Shown: in pieces, positions 17,154 through 40,428 of the stretch
Numbering within the stretch: position 1 is the stretch's first letter
Layout of the letters: each line of letters begins with the position of its first letter
Source of the DNA: Asterias rubens
Lineage: Eukaryota
Length of the DNA stretch: 64,000 nt
Assembly (NCBI RefSeq): GCF_902459465.1
Contig: NC_047083.1
Coordinates: 682,001-746,000 of the forward strand
Reading direction: 5' to 3'
Position numbers and translations under genes: made by a program
The notes under the pieces: generated by a model
The model's database searches: none
The model's input: only the letters and a program-made list of their open reading frames with translations
What the model was told of the DNA's origin: nothing

Positions 17154-17401
17154 GTCAGAACAAGACACTGGAGGTTAAACAAGGGGGACCAGCCCACTAT
17201 ACGTCAAACCAGGCCAATAAGGGCAATAACCTTCATGGAGGCAATCTCCTTCAATCACTGCGCTCTAACACAAAACTGGATTCATTTAAGAACTGCCTGA
17301 AAACCCACATACATGTACATGTATACAACAAGTTGCTCTGTAGTTTGTACATGCAAATGTTACTTGTTTGCTTTCTGCATTTGAAGACCACAAACAACAT
17401 T

Positions 17402-18923
17402 CTATCCAGTGTGGACACGCTGGTGGACATGGAGGGACTTTAAATATGGAAACTCTTTCCCACAAGTACCACAAACAAATGGTTTCTCTCCAGTGTGGAC
17501 ACGCTGATGCTCTTTCAGTGCAGATTTAAATGAGAAGGTTCTTCCGCAGATATCACAAACAAATTGTTTCTCTCCAGTGTGGATACGCTGATGTTTGTTA
17601 ACAGATGACGTTGACGAAAAGTTTTTACCACAAATATCACAAGCAAACAGTGTGGGTAAGCTCATGATTCGTCAGGTGTGCTTTCCTCGAGAAAGCTTTT
17701 CCACAATAGTCACAAACAAATGGTTTTTCTGCAGTGTGAATATGTTGATGTTTGGTCAGATAGGATTTTATGGAGAAGGCTTGTCCACAAAGATCACAAA
17801 CAAATGGTTTCTCTTCAGAGTGGATACCTCGTTGGTGAGCGGAAAGAGCTGATGTCTGCACAAAAGCTTTTCCACAAAAGCTACAGACAAATGGTTTCTC
17901 TCCAGTGTGGGTACGCCAATGAAGGATAACGTACCCTTTATTCTAAAAAAGTTTGGCCACAAGTCTCACAAGCAAATGGTTTCTCTCCAGTGTGGATACG
18001 CCGATGGTCTGTCAGGTGCGTTTTCTTCGTGAAAGTTTTTTCACATAAGTCACAAGCGAATGGTTTCCCTCCAGTGTGGACACGCTGATGAGTTGACTGT
18101 GATGATTTACATGTAAAGGCTTTTCCACAAATGTCACAAAAATAAGGTTTCTCTCCAGTGTGGACACGCTGATGGTTTATCAGGGTGGATTTGAGAGAGA
18201 AGGATTTTCCACAAAGGTCGCAAACAAAAGGTTTCTCTCCAGTGTGGATGCGCTGATGGTTGGTTAGGGACTTTAAATATGGAGACTCTTTTCCACAAGT
18301 GCCACAAACAAATGGTTTCTCTCCAGTGTGGACACGCTGATGTCTAGTCAGGGCTGATTTCTTTATGAAACCTTTTCCACAAAGATCGCACACAAATGGA
18401 TTCGCTCCAGAGTGGACAACAACCTGATGGCGTGTCAGGTTATACTTTTAAGAGAAGGTTTGTCCACATAGATCACAAACAAGTGATTTCTTTGCAGTGT
18501 GGACACGGTGACGCTGATGACGGTTCAGGTTCTCCTTACGTGAAAACGCTTTTCCACAAAAATCACAAACAAATGATCCCTCTCCAGAGTGGACGAGCTG
18601 ATGGGAAGTCAGGTGTGCTTTTCGTATGAAAGATTTTCCACAAATGTCACAAATGAATGAATTCTCTCTAGTGTGGATTCTCTGGTGGTTGACCATGCTG
18701 CTTTTAAGTGAAAAATCTTGACCACAAACATCACAAACAAATGGTTTCTCTTTGGTGTGGGCATGTTGACTGCGTGTCAGTGGCATTCTATGGCAGTATT
18801 CTCCACATATATAGCTGGACTATAAATGTTATTCCTCCTTGACCGTTTCCCACAAATGGAGTCAAAACAAACAAAGTCTCTTCACAGTAGACTGTGATGC
18901 ACGGATTATGTGTTTTCTTAGCA
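17402..18923 (-). pseudogene. C2H2 zinc-finger pseudogene (ZF1), about 16-18 fingers
   Basis: TGEKP-linked fingers broken by an in-frame TAA at 18448-18450, a frameshift at about 17945 and a linker deletion at about 17650; acceptor ttttttcag at 18924. Confidence 0.88.
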
Positions 18924-20946: not shown

Positions 20947-21845
20947 GTATTTATTTGTATTTATTTGTTTATTTCCTTTATTTACCCAGGGTGAGCAATA
21001 TCAGTAAAAAACTGGTTTCCATTTGGGCCATGCGAACAAACTAACATGTTAAAAGTAAACATAAAATCACATGATAAATTACGACATAAAAATTACGTAA
21101 AATATTTAAGAATGTTAATATTAACAAAAATTCTCTCGGCAAAAGCTTACCGGTTCAGTTCATTAAAGGCAGTGGACACTATTGGTAATTACTCAAAAAT
21201 ATTATTAGCATAAAGCCTTACTTAGTAACGAGGAATGGGGATAGGTTCATGGTGTAAAACAATGTGAGAAACGGCTCCCTCTGAAGTGCCATAGTTTTCG
21301 AGAAAGAAGCAATTTTCCACGAATTTGATTTCGAGACCTCAAGTTTAGAACTTGAGGTCACGAAATCAACCATCTAAACGCACACAACTTCGTGTGACAA
21401 GGGTGTTTTTTCCTTTCATTATTATCTCGCAAGTTCGACGACCGATTGAGCTCAAATTTTCACAGGTTTGTTATTTTATGCATATGTTGAGATACACCAA
21501 CTGTGAAGGCTAGTCTTTGACAATTACCAATAGTGTCCACTGCCTTTAAACATATCAGTCGAGTTCGGTAGGTGCAACCAAGGATTAATCTGGCGGCTCT
21601 TTTCAGTTACCGTGACCCCATGAAGTGGCACCGTAACTCAATAGTCTTTTCAATAGTCTGTTCAACAGGTTACTATGTGCGTTGTATCGGCCTCCCTAAA
21701 CCGTACAACAATAGGCCAAACTCGGTAACACAAAAGTTTTAACCAACGTATGCATATGCAATCGTGTCCGGGGGTGCAAAAACCTTTCGGTGGACATAAA
21801 ATGACTGTACATCATACCGAATATCAGTAACAAGCAATATGCAAC
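20947..21845 (-). mobile_element. L2/Crack-like LINE 3' fragment interrupted by a MITE
   Basis: RT C-terminal remnants (LVKTFVLPSLAYCCSVWG in the 29.9-30.2 kb duplicate; KRAARLILGC at about 21560-21600) and L2-type end accctgggtaaataaagg plus (TAAA)n. Confidence 0.75.
21167..21545. mobile_element. TTAA MITE, family A, full-length reference copy
   Basis: Perfect 24-bp TIR AGGCAGTGGACACTATTGGTAATT with TTAA on both sides. Confidence 0.95.
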
Positions 21846-21979
21846 AAATGGAAATTTGGTTGGTAATCCTGTTTTTATCTAAGAAGAAATTTCATGCTAA
21901 GCAAATTTTTGTGCTTAGCAGCTCTATGAAATTGGGCCCAGATCTACTTGTTCTATTCTAAACAAACATAGTCAATTAA

Positions 21980-22384
21980 AGCACTGGACACTATTGCAGT
22001 ATTGGTAATTACTCAAAATAATTGTTAGCATCAAAACCTTCTTGGTAACGAGCAATGGAGAGCTGTTAATAGTAATGGTATAAAACATTGTGATACGGCT
22101 GCCTCTGAAGTAATTTTTGAGAAAGAAGTAATTTTCACTAAAATATTTGAATTAAATTTGAGACCTTAGCTGAGGTCTCGAACTCAAGCATTTGAAAGCA
22201 CACTTGTGCGACAATGGTGTTTTTTCTTCCATTATTCCCTCGCTACTTCAACGACCAATTGAGTCTAAATTTACCCCTTTTTGTTATTTTATGCATACAT
22301 GTACATGTACATGTACGTGTACATGTATACATGTATGTTGAGAGACACCAAGTGAAAATACAATACCAAAGGTGTCCAGTGGCT
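21980..22384. mobile_element. TTAA MITE, family A variant (chimera of the two copies at 30326 and 30694)
   Basis: ttaa|AGCACTGGACAC...GTGTCCAGTGGCT; sequence switches at GAAGTAATTTTCACTAAAATATTTGAATT. Confidence 0.8.
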
Positions 22385-22943
22385 TCAAAATAAAAATTAT
22401 GAACACATAATTATTAAGAATTATATTCACTGGGGATACCTAATGTTCTTGTTCTATATATTCTAAACATACATAGTCAATTAAAATAAAAATTATGGTG
22501 ACAAAACTATTGAGAAGTTTATTCCATGTGAATGTACTTGTTCTGTTCTAAACATACAGTCATAAGGGAAGCTTTCTACTATAGCATTATCTTCAAACTG
22601 TGTGAGTTTAATGTAAATCTTTCCTACAAAAAGTACCCAGACCCTTGTTCAGTCACAAGTTGACTGACCCCATACTGGATATCATCGATTGGGCCTGCAG
22701 TCTAAGCTTAAAGGGTTACGTTGCCTTGGATTGGGCGAGTTGGCGCTTGAAGGCGCTTGAAACCGTTTATGAAAACATGCCTCAAAGTTGCATGGTGTTC
22801 CTTAATACAACACGTGAACTAACACATTCGGCCGTTTTGTAGTTAAAAAAGTAACAGGAAAACCACGCCATGTCCATGCATACTTCGATCGTGTTCCCAG
22901 GTTTCGTTGAGCATACTGCATAATTATAGTTAGAACGGATCAT

Positions 22944-24130
22944 TTAATTATTTTCCTGCGGTCGATGTTCACGCTGCTGATGGGTGGTCAGAGAACGTTT
23001 GTGTGAAAAAGCTTTTCCACAAATGAGACAGAGATACGGTTTTTCCCCAGTGTGGACCCGCTGATGACTAGTTAAATTAGTTTTCTGAAAAAATGTTTTT
23101 CCGCAAATATCACAAAGAAATGGTGTCTCTCCAGTGTGGATTAGATTATGGTCTTTCAAGTGAGATTTTCGTGAAAATGCTTTTCCGCAAATGTCACAAA
23201 CAAATGGTTTCACTCCAGTGTGGACTCTCAGGTGGTCATAGGAAGATTGAATCGAAAATGCTTTTCCACAATAGTGACAAACAAAATGGTTTCTCTCCAA
23301 AGTGAATTCTCTGGTGTCCAGCAAATTTGATTTGATTTGAAAGTTGAGTTGATTGTCCACAAATTCCATGTTTCTCTCCAGTGTGAACTCTTAAGTGAGT
23401 CCTTAAATTGCTTTTGTGAGCAAATTCTTTTTCACAAATGTCACAAACAAAATGGTTTCTCTCCAGTGTGGACACGCAGATACAAACCCAATTGTTGTTT
23501 TGAAGGAAATGCTTTTCCACAAATCTCACAAAGAAATGGTTTCTCTCCAGTGTGGACCAGCTGATGGCGTGCCAGTGACGATTTATGCGAGAAAGCTTCT
23601 CCACAAATATCACAAACAAAAGGTTTCTCTCCAGTGTGGACACGCTGATGATCTATCAGTGAACGACTATATGAATACGATCTTCCGCACAATTCACAAA
23701 CACATGGTCTTTCCGCTTATGGACAGTCAGGTTAAACTTTTGTGAAAAAGCTTTTCCACAAATATCACAAACGAACGGTTTCTCTCCGGTGTGGGTACGC
23801 CGATGAACAGTCAGGTAAATTCTTTGTGTGTAGGCATGTCCACAAATTTCACACACAAAATGGTCTTTCTCCGGTGTGGATACGCGTATGAACAGTCAGG
23901 TTATTTTTGTGTGTGTAGGCATTTCCACAAATGTCACAAACAAACGGTTTCTCGCCAGGTTGGGTACGCTGAGGGAGTGTCCGTGAGCAGGATTTTCCAA
24001 AAGTTTCACAAACAATTGACTTTTCTCCAGTGTGGACTCTTTGGTGCTTTCTTAGTTAGTGTTTTTGAGAGAACGACTTGCTACACACATCACATACAAA
24101 TTCAAATGTCTTCTTCCGCTCACAATTCAT
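22944..24130 (-). pseudogene. Frameshifted duplicate of the ZF2 zinc-finger gene
   Basis: Same N- and C-termini as ZF2; lacks 7 fingers (588 bp); 13-bp deletion at 23713/23714; three +1 insertions (about 23285, 23451, 23859). Confidence 0.9.
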
Positions 24131-24833
24131 GTTCAAAAATTATTTTAAAACATCATTGCCAACATCACAAATAAACAGTTTCCCCTCCTCCGTGCAAGTT
24201 CGATTTATGATTTAATTTACATCAGTGTCTTTAAGTTAACAGTGGTTGATGACTTTAAAGTCGCAGTGTTACATCACTCATCTGCAGAGAAGGCAGAAAC
24301 AAAACGTGTATTTTTCTACTAATGATTTAATATTATTATTTTTATTATTATTATTACTCAAATGACTTTAGCATAGGCTTTTGAAATCAATCAATCAATC
24401 AGTCAAAGGTCAGATGCTGGAGAACTAACTACTTCTAGCTTAGAAACTATCAGCTCACCCTTTCTAGAAGTATTGCAGAACAGTTGAAAATACCACTTGA
24501 TTATCTGAGTTTTTCCATAAAAAAGAAAAGGATGAGGGCATGTTTTTGTTTTTTCTTTTTTCTTTCAAAGGTGGCCGCCAAGCATTTTTATTCAAACTTG
24601 CCACCAATTATTCCGTTTAAAATCACCACTTACTTTATGTAGTTTGTAAAAGATTAGTAAGTTTAATGAAAAATTAACTTAAATTTTTTTTTTTTTTTAA
24701 CAATATGTAAAATAAAAAATAATTAAACAAAGGATGCGGCCTCAAAATAGAAAGGGAGGGGACGATCAACTTTTGGCCTTATTTAAGCATTTTTAACATA
24801 AAAGCTCTCTCCAATGGTTTTTGTTTCGTTTAA

Positions 24834-25184
24834 GGATTTGAGTACTTTTTCAAAATGTCCATAGATTTACATTAAACTTACAGAGTTTGAAGATAATGAT
24901 AGTGGAAAGCTTCCCTTCAAATCTTACTTACTGAGGTGCTGTAGTTTTTGAGAAATGAGTAAAACAATGACATGAAAAAACGTTTGAAATGATTAAAATA
25001 TTGTCGTCTCATGAGACGAAAATTATTTTCATGACATTGTTTTACTCATTTCCCAAAAACTACAGCACATCAGCACTTAATATTTTCAGGGAAGCTTTCT
25101 ACTATCATTATCTTCAAACTGTGTAAGTTTAGTGTAAATCTATGGAAATTGTGTTTTTTGTCCTACAAAAGTTACATAGACCCT
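24834..25184. mobile_element. Long-palindrome TTAA MITE, family D (fragments at about 22570-22645 and 31360-31435)
   Basis: Arms ttgaagataatgatagtggaaagcttccc / gggaagctttctactatcattatcttcaa; ends ...AGACCCT|ttaa. Confidence 0.75.
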
Positions 25185-25393
25185 TTAAATTAGTTGACAG
25201 AAATTAACATTTTTTTCACATACCTGCCATGTATCTTGCCTTTATAAACAAATGTTCTCCAGCAGATTTCGTTGGTACACCACCCATTCCAAAGATCACA
25301 CACGACCAATGACTCGACTACAATGTACATGTAGGCCTATGCACATAATATATCACAATCCCCCGTTGGCCTTCCCACAACACACTGCATGTT

Positions 25394-25758
25394 AGTGGAC
25401 ACTATTTGTAATTGTCGAAGACTAGCCTTCACAGTTGGTGCTCAACCATGCATAAACAACCTGTGAAAAATTGAGCTCAATCCGTCATCGAAGTTTCGAG
25501 ATAATAATGAAAGAAAAAACACCATTGTCACACAAAGTTGTGTGCGTTTAGATGGTTGATTTCGATACCTCAAGTTCTTAATCTGAGGTCTCGAAATCAA
25601 ATTCGTGGAAAATTACTTCTTTCTCGAAAACTATGGCACTTCAGAGGGAGCCGTTTCTCACAATGTTTTATACCATCAACATCTCCCCATTACTCGTCAT
25701 CAAGAAAGGTTTTATGTTAATAATTATTTTGAGTAATTACCAATAGTGTCCACTTCCT
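25394..25758. mobile_element. TTAA MITE, family A (left terminus deleted relative to the 34298 copy)
   Basis: Homology to 34298-34681. Confidence 0.85.
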
Positions 25759-25780
25759 TTAAACATGGAGGCCGAATTAA

Positions 25781-26084
25781 AGGAACACATTGCCTTGGAA
25801 CGGTCGAGTTGGTATTTGAAAAGCGTTTTGTAACCGTTTGTTATAAAATGCATATGGTTCGAAAGATGTTGTAAAAGTAGAATACAATGATCTACACAAA
25901 TATGCCTCGAAATTGTGTGGTTTTCTTTTTACCTCGTCCGTGATAGTTCGCGACGTAAAAAGTAAACCGTACAGTTTTGAGTGATACTTGTGTGGATCAT
26001 TATAGTCTACTTCTAAAACATCTTTCTAACCATTATGCATTTCATAACAAACGGTTTCAAACGCTTTTTATAGACCAACTCGAC
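25781..26084. mobile_element. TTAA MITE, family B, right-truncated (duplicate at 34704-35004)
   Basis: ttaa|AGGAACACATTGCCTTGG... Confidence 0.8.
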
Positions 26085-26409
26085 TTCTACCTCCCCATGT
26101 GTAAACAAATTAGACAAAGCCAAGTTTGCTCGGTATGGCACATTTCTATGCTTTTTACGGATGACTAGTCGTCACAGTCGGTACAGATCAGTGTATTTTT
26201 GATCAAATTTTGAATAATAATAACGGAGCTGATAACAAAAGCTCCACTGTAAACGTGAACCAAGGGCAAGGTGTTTTTTTACGGATGACGTGTCGTCACA
26301 GCTGCAGACAAAAACCCACTCACTCGACCCAGAATTGACAATTAAAATCAGTGGATTGGATCCAAGAGTGAGTAAACAACGGCTAACGTACTTCTAGAAA
26401 CTATGTTAA

Positions 26410-26717
26410 AGGAACACGTTGCCTTGGATCGGACGAGTTGGTCTATAAAAAGCGTTTGTAACCGTTTGTTATAAATTGCATATGGTTGGAAGGGTGTTTT
26501 AAAAGTAGAATACAATGGTCCACACAAATTTGCCTCGAAATTGTGTGGTTTTCATTTTACTTTGCGAACTAACACGGTCGGCCATTTATTGGAGTCAAAA
26601 GTTTGACTCCCATAAATGGCCCACCGTGTTCGTCGACGAGGTAAAGGCAAAACCGTGTAATTAGTTCGAGGCGTGTTTGTGTGGATCATTGTATTCTACT
26701 TTTAAAACATCTTTCCA
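26410..26717. mobile_element. TTAA MITE, family B, truncated at the duplication breakpoint
   Basis: ttaa|AGGAACACGTTGCCTTGGATCGG...; its counterpart at about 35300-35602 runs on to the right TIR. Confidence 0.8.
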
Positions 26718-29930: not shown

Positions 29931-30325
29931 GGCGTTAGAGATTAGCCTTAGGTTACCGTGACCCCATGAAGTGGCACCGTAACTCAATAGTCTTTTCAAA
30001 AGTCTGTTCAACAGGTTACTATGTACGTTGTATCGGCCTCCCCAAACCGAACAACAATAGGCCAAACTCGGTAACACAAAAGTTTTAACCAACGTATGCA
30101 TATGCAATCGTGTCCGGGGGTGCAAAAACCTTTCGGTGGACATAAAATGACTGTACATCATACCGAATATCAGTAACAAGCAATATGCAACAAATGGAAA
30201 TTTGGTTGGTAATCCTGTTTTTATCTAAGAAGAAAGTTCATGCTAAGCAAATTTTTGTGCTTAGCAGCTCTATGAAATTGGGCCCAGATCTACTTGTTCT
30301 ATTCTAAACAAACATAGTCAATTAA

Positions 30326-31074
30326 ATGCACTGGACAATATTGCAGTATTGGTAATTACTCAAAATAATTGTTAGCATCAAAACCTTCTTGGTAACGAGC
30401 AATGGAGAGCTGTTAATAGTAATGGTATAAAACATTGTGATACGGCTGCCTCTGAAGTAATTTTTGAGAAAGAAGTAATTTTCACTAAAATATTTGAATT
30501 GAATTTGAGAACTCGGTCTCGAATTCAAGCATTTGAAAGCATTAGTCTCTCGCAACTTCGATGACCAATTGAGTCTAAATTTTCATCAGGTTTTTTTGTT
30601 ATTTTATGCAAATGTTGAGATACAACAAAGGTGTCAAGTGCCTTTAAAATAAAAATTATGAACAACCCTGTAACAACGGATCTACTTGTCTATCTCAAAA
30701 TAATTGCTAGCATCAAAACCTACCTGGTAACGAGTAATGGGGAGCTGTTGATAGTATGACACATTGTGAGAAACGGCTCCTGCTGAAGCAACATAGTTTT
30801 TGAAATAGAAGTAATTTTCACTAAAATATTTGAATTAAATTTGAGACCTCAGCTGAGGTCTCGAACTCAAGCATTTGAAAGCACACTTGTGCGACAATGG
30901 TGTTTTTTCTTCCATTATTCCCTCGCTACTTCAACGACCAATTGAGTCTAAATTTACCCCTTTTTTGTTATTTTATGCAAACATGTACATGTACATGTAC
31001 ATGTACATGTACATGTATACATGTATGTTGAGATACACCAAGTGAAAATACAATACCAAAGGTGTCCAGTGGCT
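30326..31074. mobile_element. Two tandem family A variant MITEs (30326-30643 and 30694-31074)
   Basis: Both sit in the same flanking unit (...gtcaattaa|MITE|aaataaaaattatgaaca). Confidence 0.8.
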
Positions 31075-31539
31075 TCAAAATAAAAATTATGAACACATAA
31101 TTATTAAGAATTATATTCACTGGGGATACCTAATGTTCTTGTTCTATATTATTCTAAACATACATAGTCAATGTAAATAAAAATTATGGTGACAAAACTA
31201 TTGAGAAGTTTATTCCATGTGACACCGGATCTACTTTTTCATGATTTTTAAAAACACTTAGGCAATTAAAATAAAAACAATTGGTTACAAGATTATTATA
31301 ATTTTATTCCCTAGAACAACGGATGTACTTGTTCTGTTCTAAACATACAGTCATAAGGGAAGCTTTCTACTATAGCATTATCTTCAAACTGTGTGAGTTT
31401 AATGTAAATCTTTCCTACAAAAAGTACCCAGACCCTTGTTCAGTCACAAGTTGACTGACCCCATACTGGATATCATCGATTGGGCCTGCAGTCTAAGCTT
31501 AAAGGGTTACGTTGCCTTGGATTGGGCGAGTTGGCGCTT

Positions 31540-31760
31540 ATTATTATTATTATTATTTATTCGGCCAAGATTTCAACAAACAGTACGAGATACAATATTG
31601 AAATATAAATAAAGAAATATAACAGTATAAGAAACAATGAATGTAAACTTAAGACATCTAGAACAATTGTAAACCAATGATTGAGTGAGACAGAGCACTG
31701 GCAATCAAGCAAGACAATTATAAAAACAGACAGGACAAGCCCATTCTAAGATGGCCAGGA
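31540..31760 (-). mobile_element. 5'-truncated LINE 3'-UTR insertion with (AAT)n tail, present only in duplication copy 2
   Basis: Copy 1 reads GGCGC TT GAAGG; copy 2 has TT[attattatt...ccagga]TT. Confidence 0.8.
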
Positions 31761-31949
31761 TTGAAGGCGCTTGAAACCGTTTATGAAAACATGCCTCAAA
31801 GTTGCATGGTGTTCCTTAATACAACACGTGAACTAACACATTCGGCCGTTTTGTAGTTAAAAAAGTAACAGGAAAACCACGCCATGTCCATCGATCGTGT
31901 TCCCAGGTTTCGTTGAGCATACTGCATAATTATAGTTAGAACGGATCAT

Positions 31950-33734
31950 TTAATTATTTTCCTGCGGTCGATGTTCACGCTGCTGATGGGTGGTCAGAGA
32001 ACGTTTGTGTGAAAAAGCTTTTCCACAAATGAGACAGAGATATGGTTTTTCCCCAGTGTGGACCCGCTGATGACTAGTTAAATTAGTTTTCTGAAAAAAT
32101 GTTTTTCCGCAAATATCACAAAGAAATGGTGTCTCTCCAGTGTGGATTAGGTTATGGTCTTTCAAGTGAGATTTTCGTGAAAATGCTTTTCCGCAAATGT
32201 CACAAACAAATGGTTTCACTCCAGTGTGGACTCTCAGGTGGCCATAGGAAGATTGAATCGAAAATGCTTTTCCACAATAGTGACAAACAAATGGTTTCTC
32301 TCCAAAGTGGATTCTCTGGTGTCCAGCAAATTTGATTTGATTTGAAAGTTGAGTTGATTGTCCACAAATTCCATGTTTCTCTCCAGTGTGAACTCTTAAG
32401 TGAGTCCTTAAATTGCTTTTGTGAGCAAATTCTTTTTCACAAATGTCACAAACAAATGGTTTCTCTCCAGTGTGGACACGCAGATGCAAACCCAATTGTC
32501 GTTTTGAAGGAAATGCTTTTCCACAAATCTCACAAAGAAATGGTTTCTCTCCAGTGTGGACCAGCTGATGGCGTGCCAGTGACGATTTATGCGAGAAAGC
32601 TTCTCCACAAATATCACAAACAAAAGGTTTCTCTCCAGTGTGGACACGCTGATGATCTATCAGTGAACGACTATATGAATACGATCTTCCGCACAATTCA
32701 CAAACACATGGTCTTTCCCCGGTGTGGACACGCTTATGGACAGTCAGGTTAAACTTTTGTGAAAAAGCTTTTCCACAAATATCACAAACGAACGGTTTCT
32801 CTCCAGTGTGGGTACGCTTATGAACAGTCAGGTAAATTTTTTGTGTGTAGGCATGTCCACAAATTTCACAAACAAATGGTCTTTCTCCGGTGTGGATACG
32901 CGTATGAACAGTCAGGTTATTTTTTTGTGTGTAGGCATTTCCACAAATGTCACAAACAAACGGTTTCTCTCCGGTGTGGGTACGCTTATGAACAGTCAGG
33001 TAAATTTTTTGTGTGTAGGCATGTCCACAAATATCACAAACGAACGGTTTCTCTCCGGTGTGGGTACGCTTATGAACAGTTAGGTAAATTTTGTGTGTGT
33101 AGGCATGTCCACAAATTTCACAAACAAATGGTCTTTCTCCGGTGTGGATACGCGTATGAACAGTCAGGTTATTTTTTTGTGTGTAGGCATTTCCACAAAT
33201 GTCACAAACAAACGGTTTCTCTCCGGTGTGGATACGCGTATGAACAGTCAGGTTATTTTTTTGTGTGTAGGCATTTCCACAAATGTCACAAACAAACGGT
33301 TTCTCTCCGGTGTGGGTACGCTTATGAACAGTCAGGTAAATTTTTTGTGTGTAGGCATTTCCACAAATATCACAAACGAACGGTTTCTCTCCGGTGTGGG
33401 TACGCTTATGAACAGTCAGGTACATTTTTTGTGTGTAGGCATGTCCACAAATTTCACAAACAAATGGTCTTTCTCCGGTGTGGATACGCGTATGAACAGT
33501 CAGGTTATTTTTGTGTGTGTAGGCATTTCCACAAATGTCACAAACAAACGGTTTCTCGCCAGGTTGGGTACGCTGAGGAAGTGTCCGTGAGCAGGATTTT
33601 CCAAAAGTTTCACAAACAATTGACTTTTCTCCAGTGTGGACTCTTTGGTGCTTTCTTAGTTTGTGTTTTTGAGAGAACGACTTGCTACACACATCACATA
33701 CAAATTCAAATGTCTTCTTCCGCTCACAATTCAT
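31950..33734 (-). CDS. C2H2 zinc-finger protein ZF2 (594 aa, about 19 intact fingers, single coding exon, no effector domain)
   Basis: Intact ORF from ATG 33734; TGEKP linkers; acceptor tctctgcag at 33886; upstream donor cag|gtatgt at 34118. Confidence 0.92.
   Translation of the reverse strand: MNCERKKTFEFVCDVCSKSFSQKHKLRKHQRVHTGEKSIVCETFGKSCSRTLPQRTQPGEKPFVCDICGNAYTHKNNLTVHTRIHTGERPFVCEICGHAYTQKMYLTVHKRTHTGEKPFVCDICGNAYTQKIYLTVHKRTHTGEKPFVCDICGNAYTQKNNLTVHTRIHTGEKPFVCDICGNAYTQKNNLTVHTRIHTGERPFVCEICGHAYTHKIYLTVHKRTHTGEKPFVCDICGHAYTQKIYLTVHKRTHTGEKPFVCDICGNAYTQKNNLTVHTRIHTGERPFVCEICGHAYTQKIYLTVHKRTHTGEKPFVCDICGKAFSQKFNLTVHKRVHTGERPCVCELCGRSYSYSRSLIDHQRVHTGEKPFVCDICGEAFSHKSSLARHQLVHTGEKPFLCEICGKAFPSKRQLGLHLRVHTGEKPFVCDICEKEFAHKSNLRTHLRVHTGEKHGICGQSTQLSNQIKFAGHQRIHFGEKPFVCHYCGKAFSIQSSYGHLRVHTGVKPFVCDICGKAFSRKSHLKDHNLIHTGETPFLCDICGKTFFQKTNLTSHQRVHTGEKPYLCLICGKAFSHKRSLTTHQQREHRPQENN
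32787..33542 (-). repeat. Nine near-identical 84-bp zinc-finger units (coding minisatellite)
   Basis: First Cys codons spaced by exactly 84 bp; mosaic of two finger types. Confidence 0.95.
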
Positions 33735-34297
33735 GTTCAAAAATTATTTTAAAACATCATTGCCAACATCACAAATAAACAGTTTCCCTTCCTCCGTGCG
33801 AGTTCGATTTATGATTTAATTTACATCAGTGTCTTTAAGTTAACAGTGGTTGATGACTTTAAAGTCGCAGTGTTACATCACTCATCTGCAGAGAAGGCAG
33901 AAACAAAACGTGAATTTTTCTACTAATGATTTAATATTATTATTTTTATTATTATTATTACTCAAATGACTTTAGCATAGGCTTTTGAAATCAATCAATC
34001 AATCAGTCAAAGGTCAGATGCTGGAGAACTAACTACTTCTAGCTTAGAAACTATAAGCTCACCCTTTCTAGAAGTATTGCAGAACAGTTGAACATAAATT
34101 AACATTTTTGTCACATACCTGCCATGTATTTCGCCTTTATAAACAAAATAATGTTCTCCAGCAGATTTCGTTGGTACACCACCCATTCCAAAGATCACAC
34201 ACGACCAATGACTCGACTACAATGTACATGTAGGCCTATGCACATACGTGTATATCCCAATCCCCCGTTGGCCTTCCCACAACACACTGCATGTTAA

Positions 34298-34681
34298 AGG
34301 CAGTGGACACTATTGGTAATTGTCAAAGACTAGCCCTCACAGTTGGTGTATCTCAACACATACATAAAATAACAAACCTGTAAAAATTTGAGCTCAATCG
34401 GTCATCGAAGTTGCGAGATAATACATGTAATGAAAGAAAAATAACCCTTGCAACACAAAGTTGTGTGCGTTTAGATGGTTGATTTCGATACCTCAAGTTC
34501 TTAATCTGAGGTCTCGAAATCAAATTCGTGGAAAATTACTTCTTTCTCGAAAACTATGGCACTTCAGAGGGAGCTGTTTCTCACAATGTTTTATACCATC
34601 AACATCTCCCCATTACTCGTCATCAAGAAAGGTTTTATGCTAATAATTATTTTGAGTAATTACCAATAGTGTCCACTGCCT
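34298..34681. mobile_element. TTAA MITE, family A
   Basis: ttaa|AGGCAGTGGACAC...GTGTCCACTGCCT|ttaa. Confidence 0.92.
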
Positions 34682-35706
34682 TTAAACATGGAGGCCGAAT
34701 TAAAGGAACACGTTGCCTTGGAACGGTCGAGTTGGTATTTAAAAAGCGTTTTGTAACCGTTTGTTATAAAATGCATATGGTTCGAAAGATGTTGTAAAAG
34801 TAAAATACAATGATCTACACAAATGCCTCGAAATTGTGTGGTTTTCTTTTTACCTCGTCCGTGATAGTTCGCGACGTAAAAAGTAAACCGTACAGTTTTG
34901 AGTGATACTTGTGTGGATCATTGTAGTCTACTTTTAAAACATTTTTCTAACCATATGCATTTCATAACAAACGGTTTCAAACGCTTTTTATAGACCAACT
35001 CGACTTCTACCTCCCCATGTGTAAACAAATTAGACAAAGCCAAGTTTGCTCGGTATGGCACATATCTATGCTTTTTACGGATGACTAGTCGTCACAGTCG
35101 GTACAGATCAGTGTATTTTTGATCAAATTTTGAATAATAATAACGGAGCTTTATAACAAAAGCTCCACCGTTAACGTGAACCAAGGGCAAGGTGTTTTTT
35201 TACGGATGACGTGTCGTCACAGCTGCAGACAAAAACCCACTCACTCGACCTAGAATTGACAATTAAAATCAGTGGATCCAAGAGTGAGTAAACAACGGAA
35301 AGGTGTTTTAAAAGTAGAATACAATGGTCCACACAAATTTGCCTCGAAATTGCGTGGTTTTCATTTTACTTTGCGAACTAACACGGTCGGCCATTTATTG
35401 GAGTCAAAAGTTTGACTCCCATAAATGGCCCACCGTGTTCGTCGACGAGGTAAAGGCAAAACCGTGCAATTAGTTCGAGGCGTGTTTGTGTGGATCATTG
35501 TATTCTACTTTTAAAACATCTTTCCAACCATAATGCACTTTATAACAAACGGTTACACACGCTTTTCAAAGACCAACTCGACCGATCCAAGGCAACGTGT
35601 TCACAAAGGCTACATTGTAGCTGCAGACAAAAACACACTATATATGGATAAGAAACCCAGTGAAAGTCTCATTAAATCACCGTGTACAGAGCCTGGGCCC
35701 AGTTTC

Positions 35707-35935
35707 AGCCATTGGACACTTTCGGTAAACAGTATTGTCCAAGGCCCAACTTCGTGTATCACAACTTATATATAAAATAACAAACCTGTGAAAATTTAGG
35801 CTCAATCGGTCATCGGAGTCGGGAGAAAATAACTGGAAAACCCACCCTTGTTTCCGCACGTTTCGCTGTGTCATGACATGTGTTTACTATAAAACCGTAA
35901 TTCTCGCTATCGAGAATTGATAATTGTTTTAATGT
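35707..35935. mobile_element. Family C MITE, partial
   Basis: AGCCATTGGACACTTTCGGTAAACAG... Confidence 0.7.
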
Positions 35936-36219
35936 TATCGAGGTTGGGTAAAAAGTAATTTATTAGTGAATGAGGCTCAGGCTAAAAGGCTATGGGGAAA
36001 ACCTCACCACCCTCGATGTTGTTCTTTGTGTTTCCATCTTCTTGCTTGTGGTCAAGCCAGTCCCTTCCCTTCACCCCCCCCCCCCCTTTTTTTTTGTCCC
36101 CCTATTCATTGTTTACCCCCTGCTTTTTTATGTATGCTTTCTAACCCCATTCATGTATTTCCACTTCACTGCTTATGTTTCACTTAGTTACCTGTTCATG
36201 TTTGTTGTGTTGTCATTTA

Positions 36220-36258
36220 GCCTTCGAGAAAGACTCTGCTAGGGTCGAAACGTCAGGC
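36220..36258 (+). repeat. Penelope-like terminal motif (hammerhead-like), copy 2, at the end of a pyrimidine-rich repeat starting at about 35970
   Basis: GCCT TCGAGAAA GACTC TGCTA GGGTC GAAACGTC AGGC. Confidence 0.5.
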
Positions 36259-37027
36259 CATTAACTATTTTTTGCATAAATAAGAAGATAATGATGTATA
36301 TTTGGTTTGCGGTAACACCACGTGTCGGGAGGAGCTTTGATCGTGGCTTTTTAGTCGTCCTGATAGCCGCTACAAACAGCGCCCTCTTGTGATTAACCTT
36401 CGCAATTTAGCCGAGTTATATAATGTGGGGGCGTTTTTCGTGGCCGAGTTGCAGAAGAATAACCGCGATCTAAGACTTGAATCAAGTCTATGGTCATGGA
36501 AGTATCGCAACTATAAAAAAAAAAAAAAAAAATGGTGTAGTTATGCGAACGAAACGAAATGACATTTGACAAATCAGGCCTGCAACAGTCTGTGACAAGT
36601 ACACACACTTTATTTGTAGATAAAAAAACAAAACAACGACCTTAGTATCTACTAATATTCTAGATGTGAATTTTGACATCTGCTTATTTTTAGGCGCATG
36701 AAGGCGCTTTCAACTGTTAATCTTCGTGCATAACAGCTGCAGTTATAATTAGCAACTTTGACTAGCAGTATGGTGGGTTTTTTTTGTTATCAATGGCCAA
36801 TATATAATAATGACCAAGGCCCCCCCCCCCATTATTGTTGTTTATTGGTTTATTTAAGAAAAGAAAGCTTTGCAGCCTTAAGGAGTCTGAATTGAGTTTT
36901 ATTTTAACATCATTAAGAAAGGCTTAACAAAAAATGAAACAAAAAAAGGGGGAAGGTACATACATTTGATAATCACTTTTAAAATAAATGGCAATACAAA
37001 CTTGTTGGTTTGAAGCCTATATCAACT

Positions 37028-38258: not shown

Positions 38259-39044
38259 CTACATCACAACAGAATGTTTTTCTGCAGTGTGTACTGCTGG
38301 ATGCAGTGTGTTATGATGATGGATCAGTTGGCTTTTGTAGATGAAGACTTTTCCACAAATGTCACAAATCATTGGATTCGTGTCAATGTAAATGTGGACA
38401 CACCGATGGCGTTTCAGTGTCAGCTTATGCGAGAAAGCTTTCCCACAGATATCACAAACAAACGGTTTCTCTCCAGTGTGGACACGCTGATGGCGAGTCA
38501 GGGAAGCTTTATTTCTGTAAGAACTTCCACAAATGTCACAAACAAATGGTTTCTCTCCAGTGTGGACTCTCTGATGGCTAGTTAAACTGTTTTTATGAGA
38601 AAACGCTTTTCCACAAACGTCGCAAACAAATGGTTTCTGCCCAGTGTGCTTACGCTGATGGATGGTCAAGGAATGTTTTTGTGAGAAGGCTTTCCCACAA
38701 ATGTCACAAACAAATGGCTTCTCTTTGGTGTGGACACGCTGATGGCGTGTCAGTGAACTGTTTAATGAGAAGGTCAGTCCACAAAGGTCACAAGTAAATG
38801 GTTTCTCTCCAGAGTGGATTCTCTGGTGGCGGACAAGGTTGTTTTTTGTTGGAAATGCCTGTCCACAAATGTCACAAACAAATGGTTTCTCTCCATTGTG
38901 AACTCTTAAGTGAGCTATTAAGTTGCCTTTATGAGAAAATGCTTGTCCACAAACGCAACAAGCAAATTGTGTCCTCCCAGTGTGGACACGCTGATGGGTG
39001 GTCTGGTGAGGAGCTCCCGAGAAGGATGCTGCACAGGTATCCAT
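38259..39044 (-). CDS. C2H2 zinc-finger ORF ZF4 (261 aa, 8 intact fingers); possibly a severed 3' part of ZF3
   Basis: Open TGEKP array; its ATG lies inside a degenerate finger (GEKPFVCVTMDTC), 194 bp past the ZF3 stop. Confidence 0.55.
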   Translation of the reverse strand: MDTCAASFSGAPHQTTHQRVHTGRTQFACCVCGQAFSHKGNLIAHLRVHNGEKPFVCDICGQAFPTKNNLVRHQRIHSGEKPFTCDLCGLTFSLNSSLTRHQRVHTKEKPFVCDICGKAFSQKHSLTIHQRKHTGQKPFVCDVCGKAFSHKNSLTSHQRVHTGEKPFVCDICGSSYRNKASLTRHQRVHTGEKPFVCDICGKAFSHKLTLKRHRCVHIYIDTNPMICDICGKVFIYKSQLIHHHNTLHPAVHTAEKHSVVM

Positions 39045-39237: not shown

Positions 39238-40428
39238 TCACTCTCCAGTGTGTAGCTTCTTATGGGCTTTTAGAGTGCCAGTACGAGAAAATCGTCTCCC
39301 ACATACGTCACAAACATTTGGCTTCTCTCCTGTGTGAGTACGCTGATGTTGCGTCAGAGTGTGTTTTTTAATGAAGGTTTTTCCACAGGTATAACAAGCA
39401 AAACGTCTCTCTCCACTGTGGACTCTTTTATGATTTTTGAGGGAGTCAGCACGGGAAAAGCCTTTCTCACAAATGTCACATTGAAATGGTTTCTCTCCAG
39501 TGTGAACTCGTTGGTGGTCTGTCAGGGTGGTTCTATGTGAGAAGGCTTTTCCACAAAGGTCACAAACGTATGGTCTCTCTCCAGTGTGGACCCGCAGATG
39601 GGAGGTCAGGCTACTCTTAAAAGAGAAAAGTTGCCCACATACATTACACTTGAATGGTGTTTCTCCAGTGTGGACTTTCTGATGACTTATAAGAGTGCTT
39701 TTCAGCGGGAAGGCTTTTCCACAAATGTCACAAACGAATGGTTTCTCTCCCGTGTGTGTTCTCTTATGTTGCTTCAAATTGAATTTATCACTGAATGCCC
39801 TTCCGCAAGAGTCACACGCAAAAGGTTTTTCGTGTGTGTGAACTCTTTGATGCCGCGATAAATTGCTATTGTTTGTAAAACCTCGACCACAAGTTTCACA
39901 GGCGAATGGTTTCTTTCCAGCGTGGATGAGTCGATGGTAGGTCAAGGTGTCCTTGGAAGTAAAGACTTGACCACAAACGCCACAAATAAATTGTTTCTGT
40001 ACAGTTTGAGTCGGCTGATGTTCTTCGAATGTGACTGTGTCCGCACAGGTTTTTCCACAAGTGTCAGATATTAATGGCTTACCACTAGGACGAAAACAAC
40101 TTGGACTCAAACTATTGCTTTCACTAACTTTGTTTTCACAAACTTTGTTTTCACTTATTATAATTTCACAAACTTTGTTTTCACTAATTATAATTTCACT
40201 AATTTTGTTTTCACTAACTTTGTTTTCACTAATTATAATTTTACTAATTTTGTTTTCACTAACTTTGTTTTCACTAATTATGATTTCACTTATTTTGTTT
40301 TCACTAATTTTGTTTTCACAAACTTTGTTTTCAATAATTTTGTTTTCACTAACTTTGTTTTCACTAACTTTGTTTTCACTAACTTCACTTGAATCAAGCT
40401 CTTTTTTAATGTCAGTGACGTGGTGCAT
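39238..40428 (-). CDS. C2H2 zinc-finger protein ZF3 (396 aa, N-terminal SENK(V/I) repeats, 9 intact fingers)
   Basis: Intact ORF; acceptor tttatctgcag at 40601; upstream donor acg|gtaagt at 41444. Confidence 0.85.
   Translation of the reverse strand: MHHVTDIKKELDSSEVSENKVSENKVSENKIIENKVCENKISENKISEIIISENKVSENKISKIIISENKVSENKISEIIISENKVCEIIISENKVCENKVSESNSLSPSCFRPSGKPLISDTCGKTCADTVTFEEHQPTQTVQKQFICGVCGQVFTSKDTLTYHRLIHAGKKPFACETCGRGFTNNSNLSRHQRVHTHEKPFACDSCGRAFSDKFNLKQHKRTHTGEKPFVCDICGKAFPLKSTLISHQKVHTGETPFKCNVCGQLFSFKSSLTSHLRVHTGERPYVCDLCGKAFSHRTTLTDHQRVHTGEKPFQCDICEKGFSRADSLKNHKRVHSGERRFACYTCGKTFIKKHTLTQHQRTHTGEKPNVCDVCGRRFSRTGTLKAHKKLHTGE
40126..40380 (-). repeat. Coding 15-bp minisatellite, 17 units (SENKV/SENKI/SEIII)
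   Basis: Consensus AGTGAAAACAAAGTT, in frame. Confidence 0.95.

Follow-up and report, generated by a model that had tools for sequence, protein, structure and literature searches.

A nine-unit zinc-finger block in a fingers-only C2H2 gene of Asterias rubens and its probable origin from three neighbouring fingers

The focal gene and its nine-unit block

The stretch of Asterias rubens DNA analysed here (contig NC_047083.1 of assembly GCF_902459465.1, positions 682,001 to 746,000; 64,000 nucleotides, in the following called the window and numbered from its first letter) contains on the minus strand an open reading frame (ORF) of 594 codons plus a TAA stop (31950..33734). Only C2H2 zinc fingers are found in this focal ORF, 17 of them canonical and three degenerate. 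The ATG lies at 33732-33734 and the TAA at 31950-31952. Nine of the canonical fingers form a block of in-frame units of 84 bp, u1 to u9 (32793..33548, minus strand; unit i has 33548-84(i-1) as its highest position).

An initial annotation made from the letters alone described nine consecutive fingers of two types in the order A, B, B, A, A, B, B, A, B. Both this order and the helices it listed were confirmed in the ORF (u1 to u9: HKNNLTV, QKMYLTV, QKIYLTV, QKNNLTV, QKNNLTV, HKIYLTV, QKIYLTV, QKNNLTV and QKIYLTV), whereas its span of 32787-33542 designates the same array in a register that is 6 nt off. Type A comprises u1, u4, u5 and u8 and type B comprises u2, u3, u6, u7 and u9. Tandem Repeats Finder reports a period of 84 with 11.6 copies, 86% matches and a score of 1327. 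Pairs of the nine units are on average 92.3% identical, and 58% of them lie above 90%; u5 and u8 are identical and not a single indel occurs in the 756 bp. Repetition of this kind is far beyond chance.

For a closer comparison three parts were distinguished in every unit, namely head (codons 1-8), body and linker. Two unit types had been named as the sources of the array. This does not hold, as a third ancestral unit is involved, namely the following finger u10 (C type, helix QKFNLTV; 32709..32792, minus strand). The TTC..GAT head at the 5' end of u10 is also found on u3 and u7, both of which have otherwise B bodies, and u4 has an A body with a B-type linker. Since such new combinations (C head with B body, A body with B linker) exist, the breakpoints lay inside the finger bodies. 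All linker-to-head junctions in the block belong to three ancestral junction types, and a second copy of the gene in the window, the sister copy, keeps the ancestral series A-B-C, in which the C finger is the equivalent of u10. With the composite units written as cB, the block and u10 together run (A, B, cB), one more A, (A, B, cB) and finally (A, B, C). The block is accordingly a reshuffled version of three old neighbouring fingers and not a set of independently mutating repeats. Judged by this mosaic, four or more unequal exchanges in register, or slippage events, would have been needed to produce it. The part of the initial annotation that compared the array with a minisatellite was borne out: the units are in register and nearly identical, breakpoints lie inside them, and their number differs between copies that are about 99% identical.

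Outside the block, the other eight canonical fingers are of an ordinary, diverged kind. Finger 1 (33621-33704) and the degenerate finger 2 (33549-33620) precede the block (together 33549..33704, minus strand). In finger 2 the zinc ligands are no longer present; its linker, which is of the B type, stands directly in front of the nine units. The C-terminal part at 31959..32708 (minus strand) consists of older and diverged fingers (seven canonical, two degenerate) that are common to the sister copy. The canonical fingers are arranged in tandem with TGEKP-type linkers, and about 11 residues are found ahead of the first finger. Pfam detects only zinc-finger families in the 594 amino acids (zf-C2H2, E=3.8e-101; zf-H2C2_2, E=1.3e-140).

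Transcript structure was deduced from RNA; all read evidence used here consists of 31-mer contigs of individual runs, and such contigs are not able to count units of 84 bp. A contig of 640 nt from run X9 splices 34296..34119 onto 33885..33460. It defines an exon 1 with a minimum extent of 34119..34296 (minus strand), which is untranslated, and an intron 1 of 233 nt (33886..34118, minus strand) that is of the GT-AG class according to the contig joint and the splice-site letters, with the donor CAG|GTATGT and an acceptor formed by a pyrimidine tract and CAG|ATG. Translation of the spliced sequence gives stops in all three frames of exon 1. In exon 2 the focal ATG is reached after 151 nt. A TAA in the same frame lies four codons ahead of it, and several short ORFs also precede it. 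A coding exon further upstream was considered and is ruled out by these stops together with the in-frame TAA, and the protein is therefore a fingers-only protein. Neither a PR/SET domain nor KRAB or SSXRD was detected by Pfam in the focal ORF, the sole upstream exon seen in RNA is untranslated, and no minus-strand ORF of at least 80 amino acids exists between the focal gene and the next zinc-finger gene upstream. Domain search and transcript structure thus agree with the statement of the initial annotation that PR/SET, KRAB and any visible effector domain are missing.

Upstream of exon 1 very high-copy repeats extend over 34255-36400, and exon 1 abuts one of them at about 34255-34845. Their summed contig word depth is 10^5 to 10^7 in all four runs. 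The transcript contig extends 43 nt past exon 1 into letters unlike the window, and the focal promoter may lie in or beyond a repeat.

The sister copy and the segmental duplication

The focal gene is located in one segment (29952..35526) of a segmental duplication of about 5.5 kb, the other copy of which is found at 21606-26717. The two segments are separated by 3.2 kb of unduplicated sequence. Divergence in the gene region amounts to 13 coding and four flanking substitutions, or about 1%, and several indels exist besides.

The sister copy (22747..24492, minus strand) is transcribed but is a pseudogene. As had been noted from the letters, it has a single A unit and a single B unit. The accompanying claim that it is exactly seven times 84 bp shorter has to be corrected, because the difference is 587 bp, that is, seven units fewer and one extra T at the A/B junction. 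A TAA stop at 24056-24058 interrupts finger 1. Frameshifts result from additional T residues at about 23860-23863, at 23455 and at 23289, and from a 13-bp deletion opposite focal positions 32719-32731 in the C finger. None of these five lesions is present in the focal copy. The lesions, and with them the haplotypes of the sister copy, differ between samples, as contigs of X9 lack the 13-bp deletion and those of X7 lack one of the T insertions. Contigs of run X18 are 95-98% identical, resembling a close relative, and are without the T insertion at the two such sites they cover; these two lesions are therefore derived in the sister. The same contigs polarise a change from Q to R at 32500 as derived in the focal copy; it lies outside the block and falls on a contact position.

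Each of the three T insertions converts the linker junction CCATTTG to CCATTTTG (minus strand), at three different fingers. Two of the three were confirmed in independent contigs and their presence varies between samples; the conversion was found in no other array of the window. These insertions could reflect a recurrent hotspot or could have been spread by finger-to-finger conversion.

Two copy-specific insertions set the copies further apart, one of about 700 bp in the sister intron (24492-25192) and one of about 221 bp in the 3' untranslated region of the focal copy (31540..31760, minus strand), the latter missing from the sister and from the RNA contigs. The high word depth of the 31540-31760 stretch makes a repeat insertion probable. 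In both cases a mobile element probably entered after the duplication.

Between the alleles of a heterozygous marine invertebrate, a divergence of about 1% combined with large indels would be typical. The two copies might be alleles of a single locus misplaced 9 kb apart, or the nine units might be an expansion made by the assembler. At most diagnostic sites the DNA run X1 shows sister-type letters only, and at 33662 both letters occur at about 2:1 (342 of 507). The best DNA run holds just 0.77 of the sampled words, and depth in the bin over u4-u6 is low or nil in X7, X9 and X18. However, the window has no N runs and the copies are separated by unduplicated sequence, X1 has some depth in every array bin in addition to both letters at 33662, and the silence of the other runs weighs little in view of what such contigs can count. 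Structured, unit-specific variants in a block free of indels are unlike a noisy expansion, and together with the unbroken frame they argue against an assembler artefact. An artefact of either kind is considered very unlikely.

Variation at the contact positions

The initial annotation regarded variation at base-contacting residues as a hallmark shared with PRDM9. Types A and B differ by seven amino acids (D/E, N/H, N/I, N/Y, T/K, I/T and R/K) and by two or three synonymous sites. Two of the seven differences are at contact positions, and both states of each are older than the duplication: what separates A from B at helix positions 2 and 3 was inherited from two old neighbouring fingers and is also present in the sister copy. 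Position 6 is V in nine of nine units. The H/Q difference at position −1 goes back to one C/A site where an (AC)n run meets an (A)n run. Its H state occurs in both types (u1 and u6) as well as in the sister A unit, which is identical to u1, and conversion or a mutational hotspot would be enough to explain the toggle.

Changes that are new and unique to single units are few, namely I>M in u2 (nonsynonymous, position 2), CTG>CTA in u6 and ACC>ACT in u9. I>M is thus the sole unique new change at a contact, set against two unique synonymous ones. Within types the helix codons show three nonsynonymous changes (H/Q twice and I>M once) and one synonymous change, and the whole unit about three to two. 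The claim that within-type helix differences are mostly nonsynonymous is therefore correct as a count. It fails as a sign of selection, since 76-78% of the sites are nonsynonymous under the neutral expectation and both ratios match it. Accordingly, no excess of nonsynonymous change at contact codons was found in the block when these counts were compared with the neutral proportion.

The share of amino-acid diversity that falls on positions −1, 2, 3 and 6 (the statistic of Baker et al. 2017, PMC5519329) is 0.377 in the nine-unit block, 0.304 in the whole focal gene, 0.315 in its older fingers and 0.25-0.28 in two neighbouring genes. Complete PRDM9 orthologues have values of 0.33-1.0, mostly above 0.5 (PMC5519329, Table 1). 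A comparison of diversity at these four positions with the others had been put forward as a check on the hallmark; it places the block at 0.377 against 0.25-0.32 in ordinary arrays, with enrichment p values of 0.058-0.18 depending on the counting scheme given below. The PRDM9 hallmark, hypervariable contacts on a constant scaffold, is absent from the block.

These data bear directly on the idea of a fast-evolving DNA-binding array under diversifying selection, PRDM9-like or ZNF91-like, which would track a periodic satellite or transposon target and would obtain its effector from another protein. A mosaic that took four or more exchanges to form, in a gene pair with a divergence of only about 1%, would suit such an array, as would the variation within types of H/Q at −1 and I/M at 2, the focal-derived Q>R at a further contact position, and a frame that was kept while the twin gained its five lesions. 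In addition, high identity between fingers is rare outside Prdm9 in the mouse (PMC2779102). On the other side, the contact share lies under that of most complete PRDM9 genes and near that of ordinary arrays. Position 6 is invariant, positions 2 and 3 have two residue states that are both ancestral, and the new changes occur in neutral proportion. The H/Q site, common to both types and the sister, lies in a slippage-prone AC/A run; an effector domain is absent and several upstream ORFs precede the ATG. Diversifying selection on the array is consequently quite unlikely. If the array were polymorphic and selected, it would represent PRDM9/KZFP-like dynamics in an invertebrate gene without an effector, which the tests described here do not support.

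The PRDM9-like reading of the initial annotation thus survives for the minisatellite mechanics, whereas PRDM9-type selection and function are wrong or at least unsupported: the A/B difference is ancestral, position 6 is fixed and the Baker statistic is near that of ordinary arrays. Its most far-reaching form, a hypermutable, polymorphic and diversifying coding minisatellite that tracks a periodic target in a fingers-only gene of an echinoderm, an animal without KRAB/TRIM28, is highly improbable; if true, it would be an independent invention of PRDM9/KZFP-style arms-race dynamics.

Interpretation and comparison with known systems

The explanation we favour, with a probability of roughly 0.57, is a young fingers-only zinc-finger gene in which the nine-unit block arose by unequal exchange among three neighbouring fingers and evolved neutrally or nearly so. 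The gene would be a young member of a lineage-specific fingers-only C2H2 cluster that evolves by birth and death. The ancestral neighbours A, B and C would have been amplified to nine units by in-register unequal exchange or replication slippage in the events counted above. Variation in the block would be almost wholly the reshuffled old difference between A, B and C, supplemented by few new point changes in neutral proportion; on these two grounds the block is best read as a near-neutral coding minisatellite and not as an array of the PRDM9 type. Finger growth at this locus is an ordinary case of a known process. Gain and loss of fingers has been described as a frequent route by which poly-zinc-finger genes diverge (PMC3126818). 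Translation, should it occur, would yield a DNA-binding protein, to which the block would add a degenerate, A-rich footprint with a periodicity of 3 nt. This prediction follows the standard recognition code for Q/H at −1, N or Y at 3 and V at 6. The predicted site has an A at about every third base and its information content is too low for a meaningful binding-site scan.

Several observations weigh against the favoured explanation. Three of the four contact positions are among the eight variable positions of the block (hypergeometric p=0.058; p=0.18 with the count restricted to the 19 positions that are free to vary). Of the 13 coding substitutions that separate the copies, five lie in a single B unit (focal 32793-32876 versus sister 23776-23859), where the changes GTT/GTG, AAA/AGA, AAG/CGG and ACT/ACC correspond to a divergence of about 6% as compared to 0.7% elsewhere; no donor for the clustered changes of the sister B unit (AGA, CGG and GTG) exists within the window, and the excess is unexplained. 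Furthermore, the contrast of two versus nine units sets an intact gene against a pseudogene, and a single deletion of seven units in the sister explains it as well as an expansion in the focal copy does. In the mouse genome, Prdm9 is reported to surpass every other zinc-finger gene by far in inter-finger identity above 90% (PMC2779102), and a block in which more than half of the pairs exceed this value is therefore notable, though not unprecedented. Finally, at diagnostic sites the letters in the RNA of X7 and X9 are those of the sister, namely the stop at 33662, the +1 at 32288 and an 8-bp insertion at 31890.

From these letters it follows that the pseudogene type is transcribed and spliced. 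They also lead to the question of whether the focal ORF is a working gene at all or only a recent copy in a family of transcribed pseudogenes that has no stop yet, with the nine-unit block as a junk expansion. Along with two samples whose RNA contigs show only the stop-bearing type at the three sites, this explanation can point to three degenerate fingers older than the duplication, to several upstream ATGs in the 5' untranslated region, to the decay of neighbouring arrays and to the lack of any close protein among 5.8 billion clusters, owing to which no public annotation calls the gene. The frame is nevertheless intact over 1782 nt and the zinc ligands are kept in all nine new units. All five lesions are on the twin, for which the chance is (1/2)^5, about 0.03, if they are independent; the argument becomes weaker if the three T insertions were spread by conversion. 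Their location on one copy is weak evidence for constraint on the focal ORF. One RNA contig of X7 matches u8-u9 without a mismatch, including a Q-type A unit that is missing from the assembled sister, and some focal-type array sequence is therefore present in RNA. We regard a non-functional focal ORF as rather unlikely, and retain a young gene with a near-neutral array as the preferred explanation.

Five arrays of fingers occur in the window (34-43% GC), on its minus strand and between its positions 17 and 40 kb; at least two of them are pseudogenes, namely the sister copy and the array at about 17.4-18.7 kb. Together they make up a birth-and-death cluster. The array at 17300-18900 (minus strand) has about 14 fingers with two frame changes and an in-finger stop, which makes it a decayed member of the cluster. 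Two adjacent finger ORFs in different frames, 38259-39044 and 39238-40428 (minus strand), are about 190 bp apart. Finger-like sequence continues upstream of the ATG of the downstream ORF, and the pair may be one gene split by a frameshift. The ORF at 39238-40428 also contains in its N-terminus a coding minisatellite of 15 bp with about 18 copies (40110-40385) that encodes SENKV/ISENK-like repeats.

Neither an orthologue nor an allele of the focal protein was found in the collection of protein clusters, only generic zinc-finger proteins (best identities 52% for the whole protein, 63% for the N-terminal residues 1-66 and 56% for the 10-unit block). Exact-pattern scans of metagenome contigs with the A-unit pattern and with the unique downstream finger were both blank.

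The locus provides a clean and datable snapshot of the growth of a zinc-finger array, in which three fingers were rearranged by at least four exchanges while a twin decayed over the same period. It is also a caution for scans of such arrays, as reshuffled old differences between neighbouring fingers can mimic variation at contact residues.

Among known systems, the PRDM9 minisatellite (Oliver et al. 2009, PMC2779102; Baker et al. 2017, PMC5519329) likewise consists of 84-bp finger units in one exon, has near-identical units including identical pairs, and undergoes in-register unequal exchange with changing unit number. The focal gene differs in that KRAB, SSXRD and PR/SET are missing and in that only 9 of about 20 units are homogenised, with two fixed types. 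Furthermore, the contact share of its block is 0.38 versus mostly above 0.5, with an invariant position 6 and no nonsynonymous excess.

A second point of reference is given by the fingers-only Krueppel-type proteins (OZF/ZNF146-like and ZFP2/ZNF271-like), which consist of C2H2 fingers alone with about 11 residues ahead of the first one. These designations are the automatic names of the best database hits (32-56% identity); the similarity is generic to the finger fold and does not imply orthology.

A third point of reference is given by the clustered, lineage-specific poly-C2H2 genes, three features of which are found here: TGEKP-linked fingers, a cluster of paralogues and pseudogenes, and in-register gain or loss of fingers between close paralogues. 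The primate KZNF genes (Nowick et al. 2011, PMC3126818) and the mouse KZFP clusters (PMC5363842) share with the present cluster the tandem duplicates, the many pseudogenes, the canonical TGEKP linkers and the number of fingers as the main difference among close relatives. In contrast to them, the focal gene belongs to an invertebrate lineage and has neither KRAB nor another effector, and the gain or loss of seven units within a pair about 1% diverged is an unusually large and recent step.

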